From Podarcis filfolensis (taxonomy: Eukaryota), in NCBI GenBank assembly GCA_964270895.1, contig OZ185435.1: DNA of 64,000 nucleotides. One strand, given 5' to 3'. Under the pieces are notes generated by a model. The model searched no databases, was not told the origin of the DNA, and saw only the letters and a list, made by a program, of their open reading frames with translations. Position 1 is the first letter of the stretch. Every line of letters starts with the position of its first letter. This document shows, in pieces, positions 8,533-25,063 of the stretch. A program made the position numbers and the translations under genes.

Positions 8533-9106
8533 TTATCTGTCCAGTAGCTGTTTCAAGGCTCTTTCTATGTTCATTCTGTGACCAACTCTAGTCACTCCAA
8601 GGTCTATCAAGTCTTCCTTCTGAAGGTTTGGTAAGTGAGTGCCATCTATTTCATTATCCATAAAGGTCTCTTTATGTTCACCTAAGTTTAAACTCTCCAA
8701 CCAATCTGCCACATCTGGCTTGGTCCACAGGTGGACAGGCTTAGTTGTAAAAGGCTTATTTGATATTGGCTGTTGCAAGATTGAGGGAGAAGGAGACCTG
8801 CTGCGCCCTGTGTTCAAAGCGAAGAGGTCCCCCGAAGGAGGCTGGCTGGGTAGGCTAAAAACATCAGAAAGTGTTGGAGAAGGAGATGCAACTGGAGCAG
8901 CAGCAGTCAGAGGAGCTGGCATGATGTCCTTACTTATTTCTGTTGGTGAAACCACTGGGCTTGGAGCATGTCTTGCTCCTGGTGTCCTACTATCATAGTC
9001 TGGGGATCTGCTCTGCAGTGTGATTGGCTGGCTAGTCCCAGGCCGGACAGTAAAAGTGATGGTTGAACTTCGAGTACCTGAGACAGTGCTCATGACTTCT
9101 GTGCCC
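8533..9106 (-). CDS. SHANK2: SHANK2 last coding exon, SAM domain (...WTKPDVADWLESLNLGEHKETFMDNEIDGTHLPNLQKEDLIDLGVTRVGHRMNIERALKQLLDR*)
   Basis: tatttcag|G GGC ACA GAA...AGA TAA; the phase-2 join with the upstream exon gives R-G-T-E-V-M. Canonical Shank SAM C-terminus. Confidence 0.98.
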
Positions 9107-9690
9107 CTGAAATAAACAAATAAAAATGAACAGGAAATATTCAGACTATCCACGCATTAAAAATACAAACCAGCTCATTGCTAACTTATGACACGATTAC
9201 GTATTAAAGATATATATAAATGCCAAAGAGATACCATACGACTTTATGAAAACAATAGTGGCAGAAAACTATGAGCAAGCTTTACAAATATTTTAAAAGT
9301 CAAAGACAATGTCAAATATGCTGCTAAAAATTAACTCTAGCCATTGAATCATTGCCCCAAAGAGCATTATGGTAGCAGAAGGTGTTTAATTGTGGTGAAT
9401 CTCACAAGAGAGTTCCAAAACTGGACAAAACAACCAAGGATGCTTCTCTGTGTCATTGTTCTAATTTGTTGCACAGATGATGCACTAAGGAAATTACATC
9501 TAAGAGATCACAGCAGGGTACAGAAGAGGAGGCAGTTCCCAAGGTAAGTTATATGCTGAAACCAGTCTTGCTAAGCATAGGCCAGAATCCTAGAAGAACC
9601 CAGTTCTGATGCTTGGGAACTTTACCTTCAGGAGGCAGGCCATTGTGTTTTGAACTAGCTGAATGCTCTTAGTACAGTGACCTGGATCAC

Positions 9691-10064
9691 CAGGGGTAGT
9701 TCTACGCATTGGCAGAGCAAGCCAATTGGGTGCCTGGGGTGGCATGCGTGCCCTGCACCCAGGGGCAGAGCCAGCCGCCTACGGACAGGGCGAGCCAGGG
9801 CAGGATGCTCTGTGGGGCCTCCGAGGAATCTGCCTGCCTCCTCCCACTTGGCCGCCCTACAGCTGAGGGGGAGGTAGCGGGTGGACTGTTTGGGGCAGCG
9901 AGGAGCCTGCAGGCGCCCAAGCCACCGCGTCATTCCCAGACGAGATGCGTGGCTCGGGCGTGCTGCAGGCCCTGTGGTGAGTGCTGCCCGGCATTTTGTT
10001 GCCCCCCTTAGTGGTGCCACCTGGGGTGACCCACCCCCAGCACACACCCCTTCCTCTGCCCCTG
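9691..10064. mobile_element. GC-rich hAT-like MITE
   Basis: Ends CAGGGGTAG... / ...CTCTGCCCCTG; GC island in an AT-rich intron; end resembles the 26742 element. No TSD found. Confidence 0.5.
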
Positions 10065-13000: not shown

Positions 13001-13572
13001 AAATGACATCCAGACTAAAGCTGTGCATTTTATTTAACATAGAACAGTTAGGGATTTTAAAAAAATCTTTCAGAAATTAAAAAAATACTAAATTGAGCTG
13101 CTTAAAATATTGATTGTCAGAAGCGGGGAAAGAGTTTCTTCTAGAAATATCAAACACATCCACATCCATAGCTGTGTGAAATAAAGTATTTGTTAGCAAC
13201 TTCGGACTATACCCTTTTCTGTAAATTGTCAATAAGCGGTTATTAGACTAGAGACAATTCTTTCCAACCAAATTTACTTTTCTAATATGGCTTTTTATAT
13301 TGTCAGGAATATATATATATATGAAAAGCTGGCTCTATTAGGAATAAGCATACAGTGATATTTTGTTGCAAATATTCACTTCCTTTGATTCCTCTGATTG
13401 CAATACACATTATGTTGTCTTAGATTATTTCACAATATGTAATTACTGTGTCACATCACTGAATTTTCCCAGGAAAAGCAGTCTGTAGGCATGAATTCCT
13501 ATTAAGTTATTTTGAGCCATTTTAATAGGATTTAAATATAGTACTACATTTTAAACAAACGTTTACTAGCAG

Positions 13573-13849: not shown

Positions 13850-14329
13850 ACTAGCAGAAAGCTTCAATATACAAGGTGGTTTTTTTCCTGCTACAAAGAA
13901 CTACATGGACACAAGAGTCATTTATATGCCAAACTGTTGCCCAAACATCTTTTTAAGATGTACAATGTGATCCTATGTATGTTTACTCATAAGAAAGTTC
14001 TCATGAATTCAATGGAATTTGCTATTTAGCAAGTGAACTAAGGACCACAGGATGTAGAGCCAAACTGTACATGATGTTCATCTTTATTTTAATATGCATT
14101 TTAAATAATTCAAATAATAGCCACCTGGTGTGGGGCTTATAATGATCAAGATTGCAGCAGTCAGTGGGTGGGGAGAGTGAGAGATTAAATCATTATTTCC
14201 CTGCTGGAGTCATGACCAAAATAAGACATTTGAAGCGGCTGTTTGCATTGGGAGGAAATCCTGAATTTGTGTTGAAGGTCTCTTCCCCCAACTTCTGCAA
14301 TCAGTCCCCTTTCAAGTGGCTGTCATTTT

Positions 14330-15300
14330 GCAGCTCAAGCTGTCTTGCTCTGGCGAGCAACCTGGATGCCGAATTCTGCACCTGCTGAAGTTTCCAAGCA
14401 GTCTTTAGTGGCAGCCCGACGTATAATGCGTTGCAGTAATCTAACCTAGCGGTTACCAGAGCATAGACAACAGACGTTAGGCTATCCCTGTCCAGATAGC
14501 CACAAGCTGGGCCACAAGCTGAAGTTGATGGAAGGCACTCCACGCCACTGAGACAACCCAAGACCGCTCTTTCAGAGGGAGTGTAACCACATCAAAAGCA
14601 GGAAATCTCCCATTCATCCGATCCAGGGACCATCCACTAACAGTGCCTCTGTCTTATCTGGATTGAGCCTCGGTTTATTGGCTCTCATCCAGTCCATAAC
14701 TGAGGCAAGACATCAGTCCAGCACATCCACTGCCACACCTGCAGATGCAAAGGAGAAGTAGAGCTATGTGTCACCAGCATATTGCTGATGACATACTCCA
14801 AAACTCTGTATCTCCACTCAGGGATTTCATATAGATGTTAAACAACATAGGGGATAAAACTGAACCCCAAGGAACTCTGCATTGAAGATTCTACAGGACC
14901 AAAGAGCAAACCCCGGCATCACCCTCTGGAAATGACCATCCAAGTAAGACCAGAACAACCACAAAGCGGTGCCATGAACCCCTAATTCAAACAACCACTC
15001 CAGAAGGATTCCATGGTTTATAGTATCAAAAGCCACTGAGAAGTTGATAATTGACTGGAACGCATTTCTTTCCTGACAGAGATCATAATGTAGTTTCTGT
15101 GCCAAAGCTGGGCCTAAATGCTGACTGAAATGGATCTAGAAAATCAGTTTCCTCCAAGAGTGCTTGGAACCCAGAACATCTCGCAGAAGAAGCAGCTGCA
15201 GTGTAGGCTTCTGAGTTCTGGCGAGATTTTGGTGGAAGCCGGTTGCTACCACTTCTCTGGGAGGGGAACCTGGAAGCCAACGCTACAGACATGTAACCTG
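14330..15300 (-). mobile_element. L2-clade LINE reverse transcriptase fragments (frameshifted)
   Basis: Peptides LDPFQSAFRPSFGTETTL, SVAFDTINHGILLEWL and RLDYCNALYVGLPLKTAWKLQQVQNSASRLL lie in different frames and are typical of L2 ORF2. Confidence 0.85.
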
Positions 15301-16484
15301 GTAAGCCATGCAACCCCAGCTTTGGTGGGAGGTGGGGAGGGGGAGTCAGCAGATGCCACCACTAACACAAATTCCAATCTATGTATCTCTTAAAAGAATA
15401 GCAGTTCCATTACAACCTGATAGTCTTCAACCCAGCATAGTCTCCAGCCCTCCAGAAGCGACACTCAGACTTCTGTCTTGCCACTATTGTTACTAGGCCC
15501 CATCTGAAGTTTTCATTGGCTCTTGTTTTCTTAAACTCCCATCCCTTCCCCACCCATCGTTTCCTCAGACCTCTGCTTTTTAATGCACTGCCTACTTTGT
15601 CCCACTGCTTTAGCCAGTCTGCTGCATGTGCAGATTCGCCACAACATTCATCTCTCTTCCCCCATAGACCTTCTAGTCCTTAAGCATTATGCAATTTCTT
15701 CAGAGGTCCTCCTTGCCTCAGAAAATATTCTGACAACGCTATTTCCTTGGCAGTTGGGAAAGTGCATGAGTTTGCACCAGCTCAGCCAACAAATACCAGA
15801 GGCTTCTCTATCATCATCATTATGTGCAATACAATTATAGACTAGAAGAAATGGCTGCCTAGAAAATCTCAATATGTGAAATACAGTCACCTGCACTGCT
15901 CACTGATACTTGTTGCCAGTTCACAACGCTACACTAAAGGCAGAAGCAATAACTGGAAGAATTTTCTTGGTGTATCTAGATTCTGGATAAGTCTTTGCCA
16001 ACCTGGCCATGCTGGCTGGGGCCCATGGGAGTTGTAGTCCAAAACATATGGAAGGCACCAGTTTGATGAAGGCTGTTATAAACCTAACAGCTACTTTGTT
16101 ACCCTACATTTTTCTTAACTAGCCTACCTAGCTCTCCTTCTACAGCATATGTCAGGAGTGACATAAGCTATGTCGAAGTTTCTTCAGAGACCACTTTTGC
16201 CACAGTTCTGTCATCTTTGCACTTTACCTCATTCTCCGCTTACTTTTCTTTCAAGATTGTCCTCCTCAGAGCCTTCCTTCAGATTCCTTGCCTCTAAATT
16301 TTCTGTCCATTAACTTCTCTGCAACCCAGGACCTATTTTCAGTCCTAAGTCTGCCCCCGTGCAACTTCTTACTCCCAACCAAACTAACACTCTCCCTTTC
16401 CCTCATGGAAATTGAACTGAAACTTTCAGCAACCTGAACAATAACTTAATCATTCATGCCAATAGTTCATGCCACCATACTAGG

Positions 16485-16679: not shown

Positions 16680-17338
16680 ACACTAGGTAAGAGGCTTTAC
16701 AAGTACAATGCAATATAAATTAAGCATTTGACTGTGTCATTGATTTCAACAAGGCTTAGACATGGCTGAATTTTATCCTTTGGCTCAATTTCTCATATTT
16801 TAATTTATTTTTTTTAACTACACACTTTCACTAATTCTAGAGTTGGAGTTGTTGGAGGCAAATTTTCCCTGGCGGCAGATGACAGAACTACAAGACTGGT
16901 TTAAAAACCCTCAAACAAGAGTTTATTACGGCTATACAAACAACAAACACAAAGCATGTGGGTGTTCTCTTTCTGTAGGCAGTTGCAAACTGCAAATTCT
17001 TCTCTTTATACACGTCACCAGCTGTGCCTAATCAGCCTGGAAAACCACACCCAGAACTTAAGGACCAAAACGTCCTTAAAGTTACCTGCACCCTTTTCCT
17101 GTTTCTTGACAAATGATACCTAACAGGAGTACTATGAGTACTGGTGAAAGTTATGTAAGAAAGGGTCTAATGTTGAAAACCTATGGTGAATTTTAAAGAA
17201 TGGCTACCACTTCTGGATAGGAGAAATATCTAATCCAAACTATGAATGAAAAATGAACAAAAGGTAACGAATGTGAACCAATGAATGGATTAAAAAAAGA
17301 AACAAACCCCAAATAAACCCCCTTTGGTCGTCACTTAC

Positions 17339-17365
17339 TTCATGGCACTTCAGAATGCCCCTCTT
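17339..17365 (-). other. Candidate 27-nt SHANK2 cassette microexon with in-frame stop (R-R-G-A-F-*)
   Basis: tgtcattttatttgctctcatgactgccgttaacag|AAGAGGGGCATTCTGAAGTGCCATGAA|gtaagt; perfect donor, pyrimidine tract, and UGC at -12. Confidence 0.45.
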
Positions 17366-18510
17366 CTGTTAACGGCAGTCATGAGAGCAAATAAAATGAC
17401 AAAATGGCATGACTGAGACACTGTAGAGTTACAAAGCAAAAGCATCTGCAAAATTGGCCGACAAACAGTTAACAAGATGAAGTGAAAGTAAAGGATGTAA
17501 CAAAGTTCAGCTTTAAAAAAAACACCTCTATTAAAATGATGAACTATTTTAACAATAAAAACTTTAATTAAAAAACAAAAAAAACCCACCTCTCTGATTG
17601 TTGGGTTATTTATGAAACACTAAGGTTATGAAGTTCAAAGGTGACCAATTCAACATCTGCCAATGCATATACTCATCTTCTTGATTTACTTTTCACTTAC
17701 CTGTCTGGGGCAAAATTGTGTTGACACTGAAACATTTACAACTCAGTATATTAATGCATGGCAATGAAACACTTGAATACCTCCTGGCTTCAGGAAGGAC
17801 TGAGGACACATAGTAAAAAATATCACAAGCGTACAAAAGAGTGTCAGAAGAACAGAATCTTCCCTGAATAAGATATTAAGTCAACAGTTTCAGGCTGGCA
17901 ACCCTGCAACTATTGTTAAATCTCAGTAACATGACCGTTAGACCCATAACATCATTATGGATTAGAATAAACCTCCAGGATAACAGATGCTGGTTCCAGC
18001 CTAAACTGTTCAAGATGCTTCCCGCCCCTTTCTTTCCCAATTCACAATTACCTCCTTTACTCTATTGATACAGCAATTATTCAGTGGATACTTGATCATT
18101 ATGTTTTAATACAACTATTTGGTTCAGAGGTAGATTAACCTGCTTATTTACTTGCTAATGTATTTACCTGCGTATTTATGAATGGGTGGTGGTGGTAGGG
18201 AGTACAGAGTTTATAATAAAAGCTGGGGAGAAGGAGCTCAAACAGCTGCTCTCTGATAATCAACAGGCTTTTGCAAGGTCTTTATAATTTGCTTTTTGTA
18301 AGATTAATTTAACAAAGATTATGTGGCAAGGACACCCAATTTCTTCCCATAAACAGCTTAAAGCAGGATGGGAGTACAAAGAACAAAAACTAACCCATCT
18401 GCTCAGGGACTGATTTTTTATGCTTATCATTTACAGATTGAATTCAGCTAAGGACTTAATTCTTTTATTTTGGCAATTTTACTATGCACTTGGTTTTGAT
18501 GGCATAATTT

Positions 18511-18511
<1 letters not shown>

Positions 18512-18549
<38 letters not shown>
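18512..18549. repeat. (CA)19 microsatellite
   Basis: Direct reading of the sequence. Confidence 0.98.
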
Positions 18550-18552
<3 letters not shown>

Positions 18553-18676
18553 GTGTCTTTGAAATGCATAGTAGTTGAAATATATATATTTTTTCCTCCA
18601 AAGGGTATAAAACTTGTTTGGAAACATCCAAACTCTTAAGACTGGTATGGAGGTAGGCTGGTTATATCTTTTCAAG

Positions 18677-18680
<4 letters not shown>

Positions 18681-18716
<36 letters not shown>
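18681..18716. repeat. (TG)18 microsatellite
   Basis: Direct reading of the sequence. Confidence 0.98.
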
Positions 18717-20974: not shown

Positions 20975-21019
<45 letters not shown>

Positions 21020-21095
21020 TAATAATAATAATAATAATTTGTATCCCGCACACCCCGGCCAAAGCTGGGCTCAGAGCGGCTAACAACAGGTAAAA
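20975..21095 (-). mobile_element. L2-related 3' end fragment with (AAT)n tail
   Basis: (AAT)~21 followed by tgtatcccgcacaccccggccaaagctgggctcagagcggctaacaac, which recurs at ~45815-45865 next to L2 coding remnants. Confidence 0.6.
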
Positions 21096-22647
21096 ATAGG
21101 CACATTCAACAACAGGTAAAAAATGGTACATTCAGCGTTTGGGGTTTCTTACATCACTCTACTGTTCCACTACCATGGGTCGCCACCTTCAGTTGAAAGT
21201 CCTATCACAGCAAGTGCAACAAATCCATCCAAAGGCTCAGTAAATTTCACAATATTGACTTTCAAAATATGCCTGACAAATGCAATCTTTCAGTGGTACT
21301 GGTTGTAAGGCAGGGTGGTTGAAGATGGGATGCAAAAGCTGACCCTCACCATATACTACCACCATGGAGAACATTTTTGTTAAAAAAGTTTTAAAAAAGC
21401 AATGTATTATTCACCATGGCAGTTGTATGCTCTGATGAAGAGGAGAGGATGACAGAACTCTCACATTTTTAACAGCTGTGTAGAAAATGAAATTTTTGAA
21501 AGTGCAGCTGCTTTCACCCCTGCATGATAAGATGCACACAACAAAATTCCACAATTGAGAGAGGAGCAAAAGCCCTTGTATCCTTTGTCTCCGGCCACCC
21601 TGGAAAAGACTAAAGCACAGGCTTTGTGACTACTCTTCTTCCAACAATTAAAACCAAACATCTCAAACAACAAATCATTAATGTACGTTGATCGCTTTAC
21701 TGGAGCAACTGAATGTGCACAGTGTGAGAACAAGATGCTAGACCAAATGGGCCGCTGGCATGATCCAGCAGGAAACTTGATTTAAAAAAATGAAACCCGA
21801 ATATGGTCCATTAGTGCATCTCCTTTCTTGCATGTGCTGAAGTCCATGCAATAAAATAAATATTTTTTAGATTAAATGTGTCACTTTTGGTTTTTCCTAA
21901 AGTTGCATTAATATTTATTATCAAATAAAGGACAGATTTTTATTTCATTTACTAAAAAAGCATAGAGAGATTCCAGATGGGATCCAAAGGTGTGAGCAGA
22001 AAGCGCTTCTACATTTGCATGTGGGACTGCTGATTTCTCTCTTCCCTTCCACCTCCAACTGGATTCTCAGGAGTGCTTTGTTGGAGGTTGTAATGGATTG
22101 CAGCAGGAAGACGAAAAACCTTGGCAAATACACGCAGTGCCACATGTGGCCCTCTGCATTGTAAACTAGACATATGTATCATGCAAAATAAAACACACAA
22201 AACTACTCAACATATTCTAAATAAGATAGCTACTACTGAAGCAATATCAACTTGAAATTAAATCAGAACTATAACCAGTCAGCTGTCACTTAGAGCCACT
22301 TTGAAACCTTTTCATTAAATGTGGAGAAGTTAGGGGTAAACCATAAAACACATAACCAGGGATTCTAGAAGGGAGAGGTGAAATTGATTCTTAACTAGCA
22401 GCATAGTAAAAGATAGCATGTTTCAATACGTGTTAATATCATAAACAAAGAAGGGCAAAGGTAAATAATGATAATAGCAATTAACGTATTTTGTAGATTT
22501 TAAAGAGGGTCACAAATTAATACTGGAGCATTAATACCATGCATTTTAAACATAAGATTAAATGGTATTTAAGACATTATTAATGAAAGCAAAGGCAATT
22601 TAAACTTACGGACACTATAGACTTAAAAAAAAATTAGTTGCATTTAC

Positions 22648-25063
22648 CTTGTACTAAGACTTGCTGTTTTTATTCCTGGAGGTGACTCCAATCCTTCCCC
22701 TGGCTTTGATGATTTCTCTCTGTTCATTTGCTGCAGTATTGAGTTCAATTCACTAATGACATTAGCCTTTGGGCCTGAGAGAACTGGGCTTTTAACCTCC
22801 GTTACATCACCCCATAGCTTAGAGGTCCTTTGCTGTACAACTTTAGCCATACCGGGCTGTGCGCTGATAGGAGGTGGGGGTGGGGCAGGTGGAGGAATAA
22901 CAAAACTATCTACAGTTTCTTCAATTAGCGCATCCTTGTAAAGTGCATTGCTTTTGTTGATTATGGGCTTCATTTTTGGCTTAGGAGGTACTGGGGGTTT
23001 GTCCACCAGAAATGTTTGCCCATCTGCATAGACTGTACAAGTATCCAAGTTCTCACCACCTTCAGAGGATAAGGTAGAGATGCTGGACACAGTTGAGATA
23101 GTGCTGGTTGTCTCTAGGTGATGGTCACTACTGCTTCGACTGTCCACCTCTTCAATCCCAGAGTCAGTGACATTATCAAAATTTTCAGGCGGTGGTAAAA
23201 ATGAGGCAGGCAAACAGTTTGAAAGACCCACTGGTTTCTTACTGTCTATTGAATTTGAGGGTTGAGTAGGATTGAATGAAGCAGGCGGAGTTCCATTTTT
23301 TCTGTGTTTGAGCAAGTCTGTTAGTGCAGAGCCTGGGACAGAATGGTCATCAGGGATATCAAAACTGTTAGCAAATTCTAAAGGCGGTGGTAATGGCTCA
23401 GTAAAGATGAAATCTTCATCAAGATCAACAGATGCTAAAGGGGGTGGAGGGATACGGAACGGTAAAATGATTGGATCATCAACGGAGCCAACTGCTACAA
23501 TAGTTTTGCAGGGAGATGCAGGTAGCTCAGGCATGTCAGCTTCATCTAGTCCACTTTCTGCTGTTTCTGTACTTTCCTGCGCCTCTGGTGGAGGCTTTTC
23601 AGTATCCACATCTATCTCAGCACTTTCCTCTTCCTTTTCATCAGGGGTATCATTGGACTGTGCTGTATCTACCGTATGAACCATGAGCAAACCAGCTGAC
23701 TTCTGCTGTGAGGTATCCACAATATTTATCAGCATGTTCTTCTTTTCTTCAGGCCTCCTCTCCTTCCCCGTATCGGTCTCATATTTGTTCTCCGTCTCCT
23801 GCCGCCTTAGTGGACCACGCGTATTTTGCCTAGCAATTGTAGCTGTCACTGGAAATGTAGTTTCGATGTTGGACCTCATCTTTGTATCTATATAAAGGGG
23901 TTTATTAAGGTCTGCTTTGCCAGATTCTCCTTTCCCTGGAATTTGCTGGGTTTGTTCCTTCATGGCTCTATCTCTGGCAGAAAGGGCAAGGGCTAAAGGT
24001 GAATTTGGATCCAGTAATTTCCCTGTGAGTGGATGAACATAGTTATCCAAACTGGACATACCAGCATTCTGAGTTGCCAACACATTATTTTCTGAACCCA
24101 TTGATGTTGGGGTTGAAGGGTTTGGTGTCCTTGCATCACTTTGATTACTTGATTCACTGCTATTAAAAATATTTTCAGGCTCTCTAGGTGCTGGGATAGG
24201 AGATGGTGATACAAGTTGCCTAAAGTTGTCTTCATTACCAAACATTCCCTCATCACTAAACTTAGACTGTCTCAAACGTGGCATTGGAGGCGACAGCCCA
24301 ACATCCTCATCTCCCAAATCTGTGGAAAGGAAAGCTGGAGAGTTACGCCTGGCTTCTAATCTTTTCTCCCTATCCCTCACTGCCCCTGCAATGGCTGCTG
24401 CAAATGGACTACTGACAGTCAAGTTATCTTCAGGTCTGAGCTGTCCTGGTTGCTCTGAAGACTGTGGGTCAATTTCCATGCTGCTTCCTTGACTACTTTT
24501 CCCACTACTGCTGGTAGATGGCTCTTTAACAATGATAGTTGGAATTGGAATAGAGCAGGTTTTTTCTGGACTATCCTCAACATTAGATTGTTTCACTAGC
24601 ATTCCCTTCCGTCTTGCTGGCTTGGCTGGGACATACACTGCTTTGCTTGCTATTTTTCCAACTTCAGAGTATGGGTTCTCCGGCATCTGACCTCTCTTGT
24701 TTCTGAAGCTTGCCTGAGTTGAGGCATTTCTGCTATATAAGTCCTCAGAATCTAGAGAATAACGGTCCATCTCTCTCCGGTAATATATCCCTTTGTCCCT
24801 TATCACCGTTCCCATATTTTCAGATCTACCTGAAATAGCTAACTTTGCACCTGAATTCTGATTAAATGCAGGCTTAATTGTCCCATATATTCTAGACACT
24901 GGAGATTTGGGGGAGTTGTAAAGAGAAGGAGATGGAGGTGGTGGTGATGGAGGTAAAGACTGTGGAGGAGGAGGGATATCTTCAGAGGTGTCTGGCATGG
25001 ATAGACTTCTGGTAAATTTTAGCATGGGAGGAGCCAAAAATTGCCGTTCTTCCTCTGTTATCC
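22648..25063 (-). CDS. SHANK2: SHANK2 large proline-rich exon (Homer- and cortactin-binding region)
   Basis: ttttaaag|GG ATA ACA GAG GAA...ACA AG|gtaaa; 2416 nt, covering the 797-aa ORF. Contains the PPxxF Homer motif LPPPLEF (23373-23393) and the cortactin SH3 motif KPPVPPKP (22977-23000). Confidence 0.98.

Follow-up and report, generated by a model that had tools for sequence, protein, structure and literature searches.

We consider it likely that the intron between the proline-rich and SAM exons of SHANK2 in the wall lizard Podarcis filfolensis harbors a real, alternatively included cassette microexon, which would date from the amniote ancestor or earlier, truncate the protein before its SAM domain, and do so in an mRNA predicted to escape nonsense-mediated decay (NMD). 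The candidate is 27 nt long (AAGAGGGGCATTCTGAAGTGCCATGAA) and lies on the minus strand at 17339-17365 of the window, by which we mean the entire 64,000-nt stretch of contig OZ185435.1 analyzed here; orthologous copies are present in five other species. To judge by these copies, its splice sites, its TGA stop codon, and the spacing between the acceptor and that TGA have been kept for about 300 million years, while the flanks, the encoded peptide, and the stretch beyond the stop have drifted.

By its coding content, the window is the 3' end of wall-lizard SHANK2 on the minus strand, because it matches a known lizard isoform and its last open reading frame (ORF) encodes a SAM domain. The 237 residues that end the minus-strand ORF at 25037-22644 (residues 560-796 of its translation) are 100% identical to Podarcis muralis SHANK2 isoform X7, and the last ORF, at 9153-8533, matches Pfam SAM_1 (E=2e-22) and SAM_2 (E=2e-18). 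The first of these ORFs, together with its translation and the donor AG/GTAAAT at 22648 (here and below, a slash marks the splice junction), defines the proline-rich exon at 22648-25037 on the minus strand, with an approximate 5' end. This exon closes in phase 2 with ...AGT ACA AG/gtaaat, and its translation contains both a Homer-type motif (PPPLEF) and a cortactin-type motif (KPPVPPKP). The last coding exon (8533-9106, minus strand) begins after the acceptor at 9106, where the sequence reads tttcag/G GGC ACA GAA, carries the SAM domain, and continues through the stop codon. The intron between the two exons is 13,541 nt long. The first residue past the junction (9103-9106, minus strand) is Gly in Podarcis and Lacerta, giving R-G-T-E-V-M, and Ser in the other sauropsids seen.

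The initial annotation had placed a 27-nt exon at 17365-17339 between a CAG acceptor and a GTAAGT donor, and all of these coordinates are correct on the sequence. On the minus strand, the element AAGAGGGGCATTCTGAAGTGCCATGAA is immediately preceded by ...ttttatttgctctcatgacTGCcgttaacAG and followed by GTAAGTgacgacc; over the wider stretch from 17400 to 17330, it is flanked by ttttatttgctctcatgactgccgttaacag and gtaagtgacgacc. The 5' splice site, AA/GTAAGTG, occupies 17332-17340, and its donor (17338-17333) matches the GTAAGT consensus. The 3' splice site, with its AG at 17367-17366, adjoins a 45-nt zone free of AG dinucleotides, and the two together span 17366-17412. The 25 nt preceding the acceptor in Podarcis are about 68% pyrimidine by hand count, which is under the 0.70 cut-off. 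What follows the acceptor is AAGAGG rather than GTAAGT, and the element does not qualify as a recursive splice site or RS-exon.

Read on from the phase-2 end of the proline-rich exon, the microexon gives AG+A AGA GGG GCA TTC TGA, or R-R-G-A-F-stop. The TGA occupies 17350-17352 on the minus strand and leaves 11 nt before the donor, so both the frame and the stop position originally proposed are borne out by the exon phases. The flanks had also been described as unusually rich in retained CpG. This stands for the lizard sequence, where the CpG observed/expected ratio is 0.45 over 17250-17500 against 0.22 for the whole intron, but does not extend across species, as the bird and the turtle share only the CpG that follows the donor.

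For comparison, the same part of SHANK2 was fetched by exact protein look-up from a bird (the roadrunner Geococcyx, L001), a snake (the cobra Naja, L002), the green turtle Chelonia (L003), the frog Engystomops (L004), the mammals Marmota (L005) and Sousa (a dolphin, L007), the gecko Sphaerodactylus (L006), and a shark (the catshark Scyliorhinus, L008). Podarcis, Geococcyx, Chelonia, Sphaerodactylus, Marmota, and Sousa make up the six-species alignment; the cobra falls outside the comparison owing to a 1000-N assembly gap at the expected position of the block described below.

By far the best-conserved part of the 13.5-kb intron is a block of about 250 nt around the microexon (17250-17496, minus strand). 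When the lizard intron is compared with that of the bird by blastn, this block is essentially the one strong match, with 180 nt aligned at 82% identity (E=1e-43); identity in the coding exons on either side is 90%. Searches with nhmmer recovered the block from the turtle and gecko introns as well, from the marmot intron with a profile built from lizard, bird, and turtle (E=5e-8), and from the dolphin intron with a five-species profile (E=1e-25).

Within the block, conservation falls on the positions that splicing and termination would require. The longest invariant run in the alignment is the donor run AAGTAAGTG, which is identical at 9/9 positions in each of the six species, and the TGA is likewise invariant (6/6). 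The acceptor is CAG in five of the six and CTG in the gecko (L006:21926-21955), where an AG 3 nt downstream keeps the frame and the exon would be 24 nt long. With the donor GTAAGT in 6/6 species and an acceptor AG in 5/6, the two sites show the conservation of a functional splice-site pair. The distance from acceptor to TGA is 15 nt in all six species, and because the proline-rich exon ends in AG/GTAA in each of them (6/6), the TGA is in frame in every species. The sole length change in the microexon, 27 nt in sauropsids versus 22 nt in marmot and dolphin, is a 5-nt indel located after the stop, where the frame no longer matters. The encoded peptide, by comparison, differs between species (Podarcis has RRGAF, the bird RGGSC, the turtle RRVSC, and the mammals RRGSC), so the constraint is on splicing and the stop and not on the residues. 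Overall, invariance across the six species extends to 10 of the 11 positions that make up the splice sites and the stop, versus 58 of 191 alignment columns (hypergeometric P = 3e-5, a value that is indicative only, because neighboring columns are not independent).

Alignment across squamates, birds, and mammals had been named at the outset as a check on the element, and it returned conserved splice sites and a conserved TGA. As far as alignment can tell, the pattern is what an exon and a stop codon in actual use would leave, and neither that of a coding insert nor that of a generic conserved element. Outside the amniotes, the 1,142-nt frog intron contains no counterpart of the block, and the catshark gave a nonsignificant match (E=0.44) without the donor. 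On the present comparison, the microexon is at least as old as the amniotes.

Two further features of the intron were noted. An ATG at 17341-17343 (minus strand), which Podarcis shares with the bird, lies two codons past the TGA and would read in frame into the SAM exon (M-K-G-T-E-V-M...). Its counterpart is GTG in the turtle and ATA in the gecko and is absent in the mammals, and a role in reinitiation is therefore unlikely. A second conserved block lies in the same intron at 13335-13471 (minus strand), with 72% identity over 139 nt to the turtle and 78% over 63 nt to the bird. This block did not turn up in the gecko or the mammals and has no obvious exon features.

If the microexon were included between the proline-rich and SAM exons, Shank2 would continue past the junction with Arg and four further residues and then end at the TGA. 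The resulting protein would retain its PDZ domain along with the Homer and cortactin sites of the proline-rich region and would lose the last 190 residues, including the SAM domain, on which polymerization and synaptic targeting depend. Retention of both binding sites had been predicted from the start, and the prediction holds up, since both motifs map to the exon upstream of the insertion. A stop codon escapes NMD when the last exon junction follows it by less than about 50 to 55 nt. For the microexon stop, this distance is 11 nt (6 nt in mammals), where the next junction is counted as the last since the SAM exon runs through the stop codon, provided that the 3' untranslated region has no intron. 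Because of this position, the mRNA should escape NMD, and the earlier argument to that effect is sound as far as stop position goes. The microexon-containing mRNA would then be stable, and the truncated protein would be made.

The initial annotation had also invoked a need for the SAM domain in synaptic targeting, and this is documented: the domain is required for the synaptic localization and function of Shank2, and artificial or patient-derived Shank2 lacking it fails to reach spines and to support AMPA-receptor transmission (PMC8760046, PMC5731535). Because experimental SAM-less Shank2 fails at spines, a natural SAM-less form with its Homer and cortactin sites intact could work away from the postsynaptic lattice or as a competitor of full-length Shank2. 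More tentatively, and with the odds in our view against the full proposal, the element may represent an unannotated, amniote-wide SHANK2 switch that would yield a stable scaffold able to bind GKAP, Homer, and cortactin but unable to polymerize or to anchor at the postsynaptic density.

The anatomy upstream of the microexon resembles that of the neural microexons that depend on SRRM3 or SRRM4 (nSR100), of which a 9-nt Shank2 microexon used in a splicing reporter is an example (PMC11283458). The likeness extends to a length of no more than 27 nt (27 nt in sauropsids and 22 nt in mammals, within the 3- to 27-nt range of the class), to a very strong 5' splice site combined with a weak acceptor, to a long AG-free zone between branchpoint and AG with UGC and a CUCUC stretch, and to a strongly conserved flanking intron in a synaptic autism-risk gene. 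According to published work, SRRM3/4-dependent microexons combine a long distance from branchpoint to AG with a strong 5' splice site, and about three quarters of them have UGC between the branchpoint and the AG (bioRxiv 10.1101/2024.09.17.613571); the median predicted branchpoint distance given for microexons of this type is 45-47 nt (bioRxiv 10.64898/2026.01.16.699960). In our alignment, the AG-free zone upstream of the acceptor measures 44-58 nt across the six species. UGC occurs in the Podarcis zone at 17377-17375 and again at 17389-17387, together with four YCAY motifs and a CUCUC stretch. The UGC positions are -12 and -24 in each of the four sauropsids, -9 and -5 in marmot, and -24 in dolphin, and each of the six species also has between three and five YCAY motifs upstream of the microexon, along with a stretch of CUCUC or CUCCC. 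UGC is thus no more than 24 nt from the exon in 6/6 species, each with the extended AG-free zone and the strong 5' splice site, although UGC near the acceptor is a weak test for SRRM4 because about 30% of such stretches carry it by chance. A UGC-type SRRM3/4 architecture was part of the first reading of this element, and in UGC, AG-free zone, donor strength, and length the sequence agrees with the published description.

Inclusion of the microexon is probably regulated rather than constitutive, because the annotated isoforms, among those listed, all skip it. That regulation is probably neural, given the weak acceptor, the very strong donor, the long AG-free zone with UGC and CUCUC, and the strongly conserved flanking intron. 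Control by SRRM3/4, PTBP, or NOVA might be envisaged, going by resemblance only. A typical neural microexon adds a few residues and leaves the reading frame intact, whereas the SHANK2 stop microexon would end it.

A search of sequencing runs turned up small contig sets of sister species that contain the proline-rich exon but are not recorded as RNA, and four raw-read RNA runs of a sister species, two bulk and two single-cell. We also looked for the predicted product among known proteins and in the literature. The 284 Shank-family proteins listed (in clustered listings) take in many RefSeq isoform sets from reptiles, birds, and mammals. None of them is a Shank2 that closes with the microexon tail (RRGAF, RRGSC, or similar), and none is a SAM-exon ORF starting M-K-G/S-T-E-V from the ATG of the microexon, which would mark the microexon-to-last-exon junction in lizard or bird. 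The absence of the tail from the listed proteins is weak negative evidence. SHANK2 is known to contain microexons of 9 nt and 12 nt (PMC11283458, PMC8627023), from which the stop microexon is distinct, and its brain-specific exons 19, 20, and 23 lie between the PDZ domain and the proline-rich region. Among the papers searched, we found no description of a stop-carrying exon between the proline-rich and SAM exons, and the MicroExonator supplements do not mention Shank2. A second small exon, suggested by the residues SIEG common to gecko and whale models, was considered and rejected, as nothing in the other loci corresponds to it.

Reading through the donor at the end of the proline-rich exon (22642-22650, minus strand; AG/GTAA in six species) would add Arg and an immediate TAA. 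Several Logan ORFs of 1028-1029 aa (P0046, P0184, and P0190) end exactly at this read-through stop, in ...LAPR. They are longer than the big exon and are therefore spliced upstream. These ORFs suggest that mammals have transcripts retaining or ending in the last intron, which would be a second route to a Shank2 without its SAM domain.

These transcripts bear on the most serious rival explanation, which is that the element is a conserved decoy, a nonproductive exon that engages U1 and U2 and controls splicing, retention, or early termination of the last intron while being rarely or never included itself. A decoy of this kind would fit a donor that is the most conserved part of the element, as well as the lack of the microexon in any annotated isoform among those listed. 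It would also fit the Logan ORFs, in which upstream splicing is combined with an end at the read-through stop of the big-exon donor and which therefore indicate that transcripts keeping or ending in the last intron exist. What a decoy does not need is an in-frame stop at a fixed distance from the acceptor. Since the TGA and its 15-nt spacing are invariant and the only indel falls after the stop, we regard the decoy as unlikely and prefer an exon that is included.

It is also conceivable that a longer exon is used with the same donor, starting at 17411 (after CTCAG) or at 17445 (after TTGCAG). The second of these starts had been flagged in the initial annotation as an alternative acceptor leading to a stop; its AG is present at 17446-17447 on the minus strand, and the stop was confirmed. 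The outcome would again be a SAM-less protein, with another tail, as both readings run into a stop codon. About 130 nt upstream of the microexon are conserved, and the AG of TCTCAG is kept in five of the six species. The AG at 17447-17446 is present in three of the four sauropsids: bird and turtle share it with Podarcis, the gecko has CAT in its place, and the mammals cannot be aligned there. However, the stretch contains a 1-nt indel between the lizards and the bird and turtle, so there is no frame constraint on it, and the conserved AG-free zone of 44-58 nt adjoins the proximal acceptor, as expected if the proximal AG is the one selected. On balance, a longer exon seems to us distinctly unlikely, and the 27-nt form is preferred.

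Alternatively, the block might be a conserved noncoding element that plays no part in splicing, for example an enhancer or a structured RNA, with an exon-like appearance that is coincidental. Conserved intronic elements are common in neural genes. An RNA structure could also be drawn: RNAalifold predicts a hairpin (17332-17392, minus strand) in which the donor AGUAAGUG is bound by UAUUUGCU from upstream and the exonic GUCAUG by CAUGAC, with one compensatory change in marmot. However, its covariation was reached by 118-135 of 500 shuffles, and single-sequence z-scores were -1.5 in Podarcis and +0.5 to +1.3 in the other five species. The idea of a donor-masking hairpin or structured regulatory RNA was rejected, as the hairpin did no better than the shuffle and z-score controls. 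An Rfam search with the element returned no family match. For enhancers and structured RNAs alike, the concentration of invariance on splice-site and stop positions (10/11 versus 58/191 columns overall) would be hard to account for, and we consider a function outside splicing very unlikely.

Finally, a functionless pair of splice-like motifs in a long intron is almost inconceivable and in practice refuted by the cross-species alignment, because an intron that is otherwise unalignable shows exon-like conservation here among lizard, bird, turtle, and mammals. In the single lizard genome, the pattern is no more than chance would give: the 13.5-kb intron contains 5 GTAAGT motifs versus 4.7 expected from its composition, and 12 pairs of AG...GTAAGT within 51 nt. 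Across species, judged on the aligned sequences, it is far beyond chance. Very probably, then, the microexon and its stop are functional and ancient.

Natural Shank products that end before the SAM domain have precedents. The rat short SHANK2 isoform AF141901 (Lim et al. 1999) ends in an alternative 3' end of exon 22, termed 22b, as described in PMC3276563. It is alike in being a natural Shank2 product that ends before the SAM domain, but it stops upstream of the proline-rich exon and is without the Homer/cortactin region, whereas the product proposed here would keep that region and lose the last 190 residues. In Shank3, the variants E21-22S III and IV arise by 3' alternative splicing and are C-terminally truncated and SAM-less (PMC4113141). 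Their stop comes from a frameshift caused by skipping of exon 21, while the SHANK2 candidate is a dedicated, stop-carrying microexon. A functional parallel may be drawn with Homer1a, a short form of a postsynaptic scaffold that keeps the ligand-binding part, lacks the multimerization domain, and uncouples the scaffold network. Homer1a arises by activity-induced early termination within an intron and not by way of a microexon, and its likeness to the proposed SAM-less Shank2 would be one of function only.

Among the genes for autism and intellectual disability, SHANK2 is a major one, and entry of the protein into the postsynaptic lattice is decided by its SAM domain. If our reading is right, cells deliberately make a nonpolymerizing Shank2 by means of a dedicated, conserved exon that ends the protein just before this domain. 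On the more tentative reading of a full switch, this would amount to a regulated, built-in competitor of full-length Shank2, following a logic like that of Homer1a. Noncoding variants or antisense oligonucleotides at the block could then shift the ratio of polymerizing to nonpolymerizing Shank2. A dedicated exon would also bear on splice-switching strategies, on the interpretation of C-terminal patient variants and of deep-intronic variants in the block, and on how Shank2 knockout and truncation phenotypes are read. It would also add a clear case of a microexon that acts by terminating the frame and not by inserting residues. Should the exon already be present in mammalian transcript catalogues, the finding would reduce to its extension to reptiles, birds, and turtles.

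Other features of the region were recorded along the way. A GC-rich stretch (GC content 0.58-0.67) at 9600-10000, 500-900 nt upstream of the last exon, has long ORFs on either strand. No Pfam family matches it, nothing in the other species compared corresponds to it, and it is possibly a lineage-specific repeat. The minus strand at 14301-15313 contains a series of short ORFs, none with a Pfam match, that have the look of a decayed retroelement. Between the proline-rich exon and the microexon lie three microsatellites, (CA)19 at 18512-18549, (GT)20 at 18676-18716, and (TAA)21 at 20975-21038.
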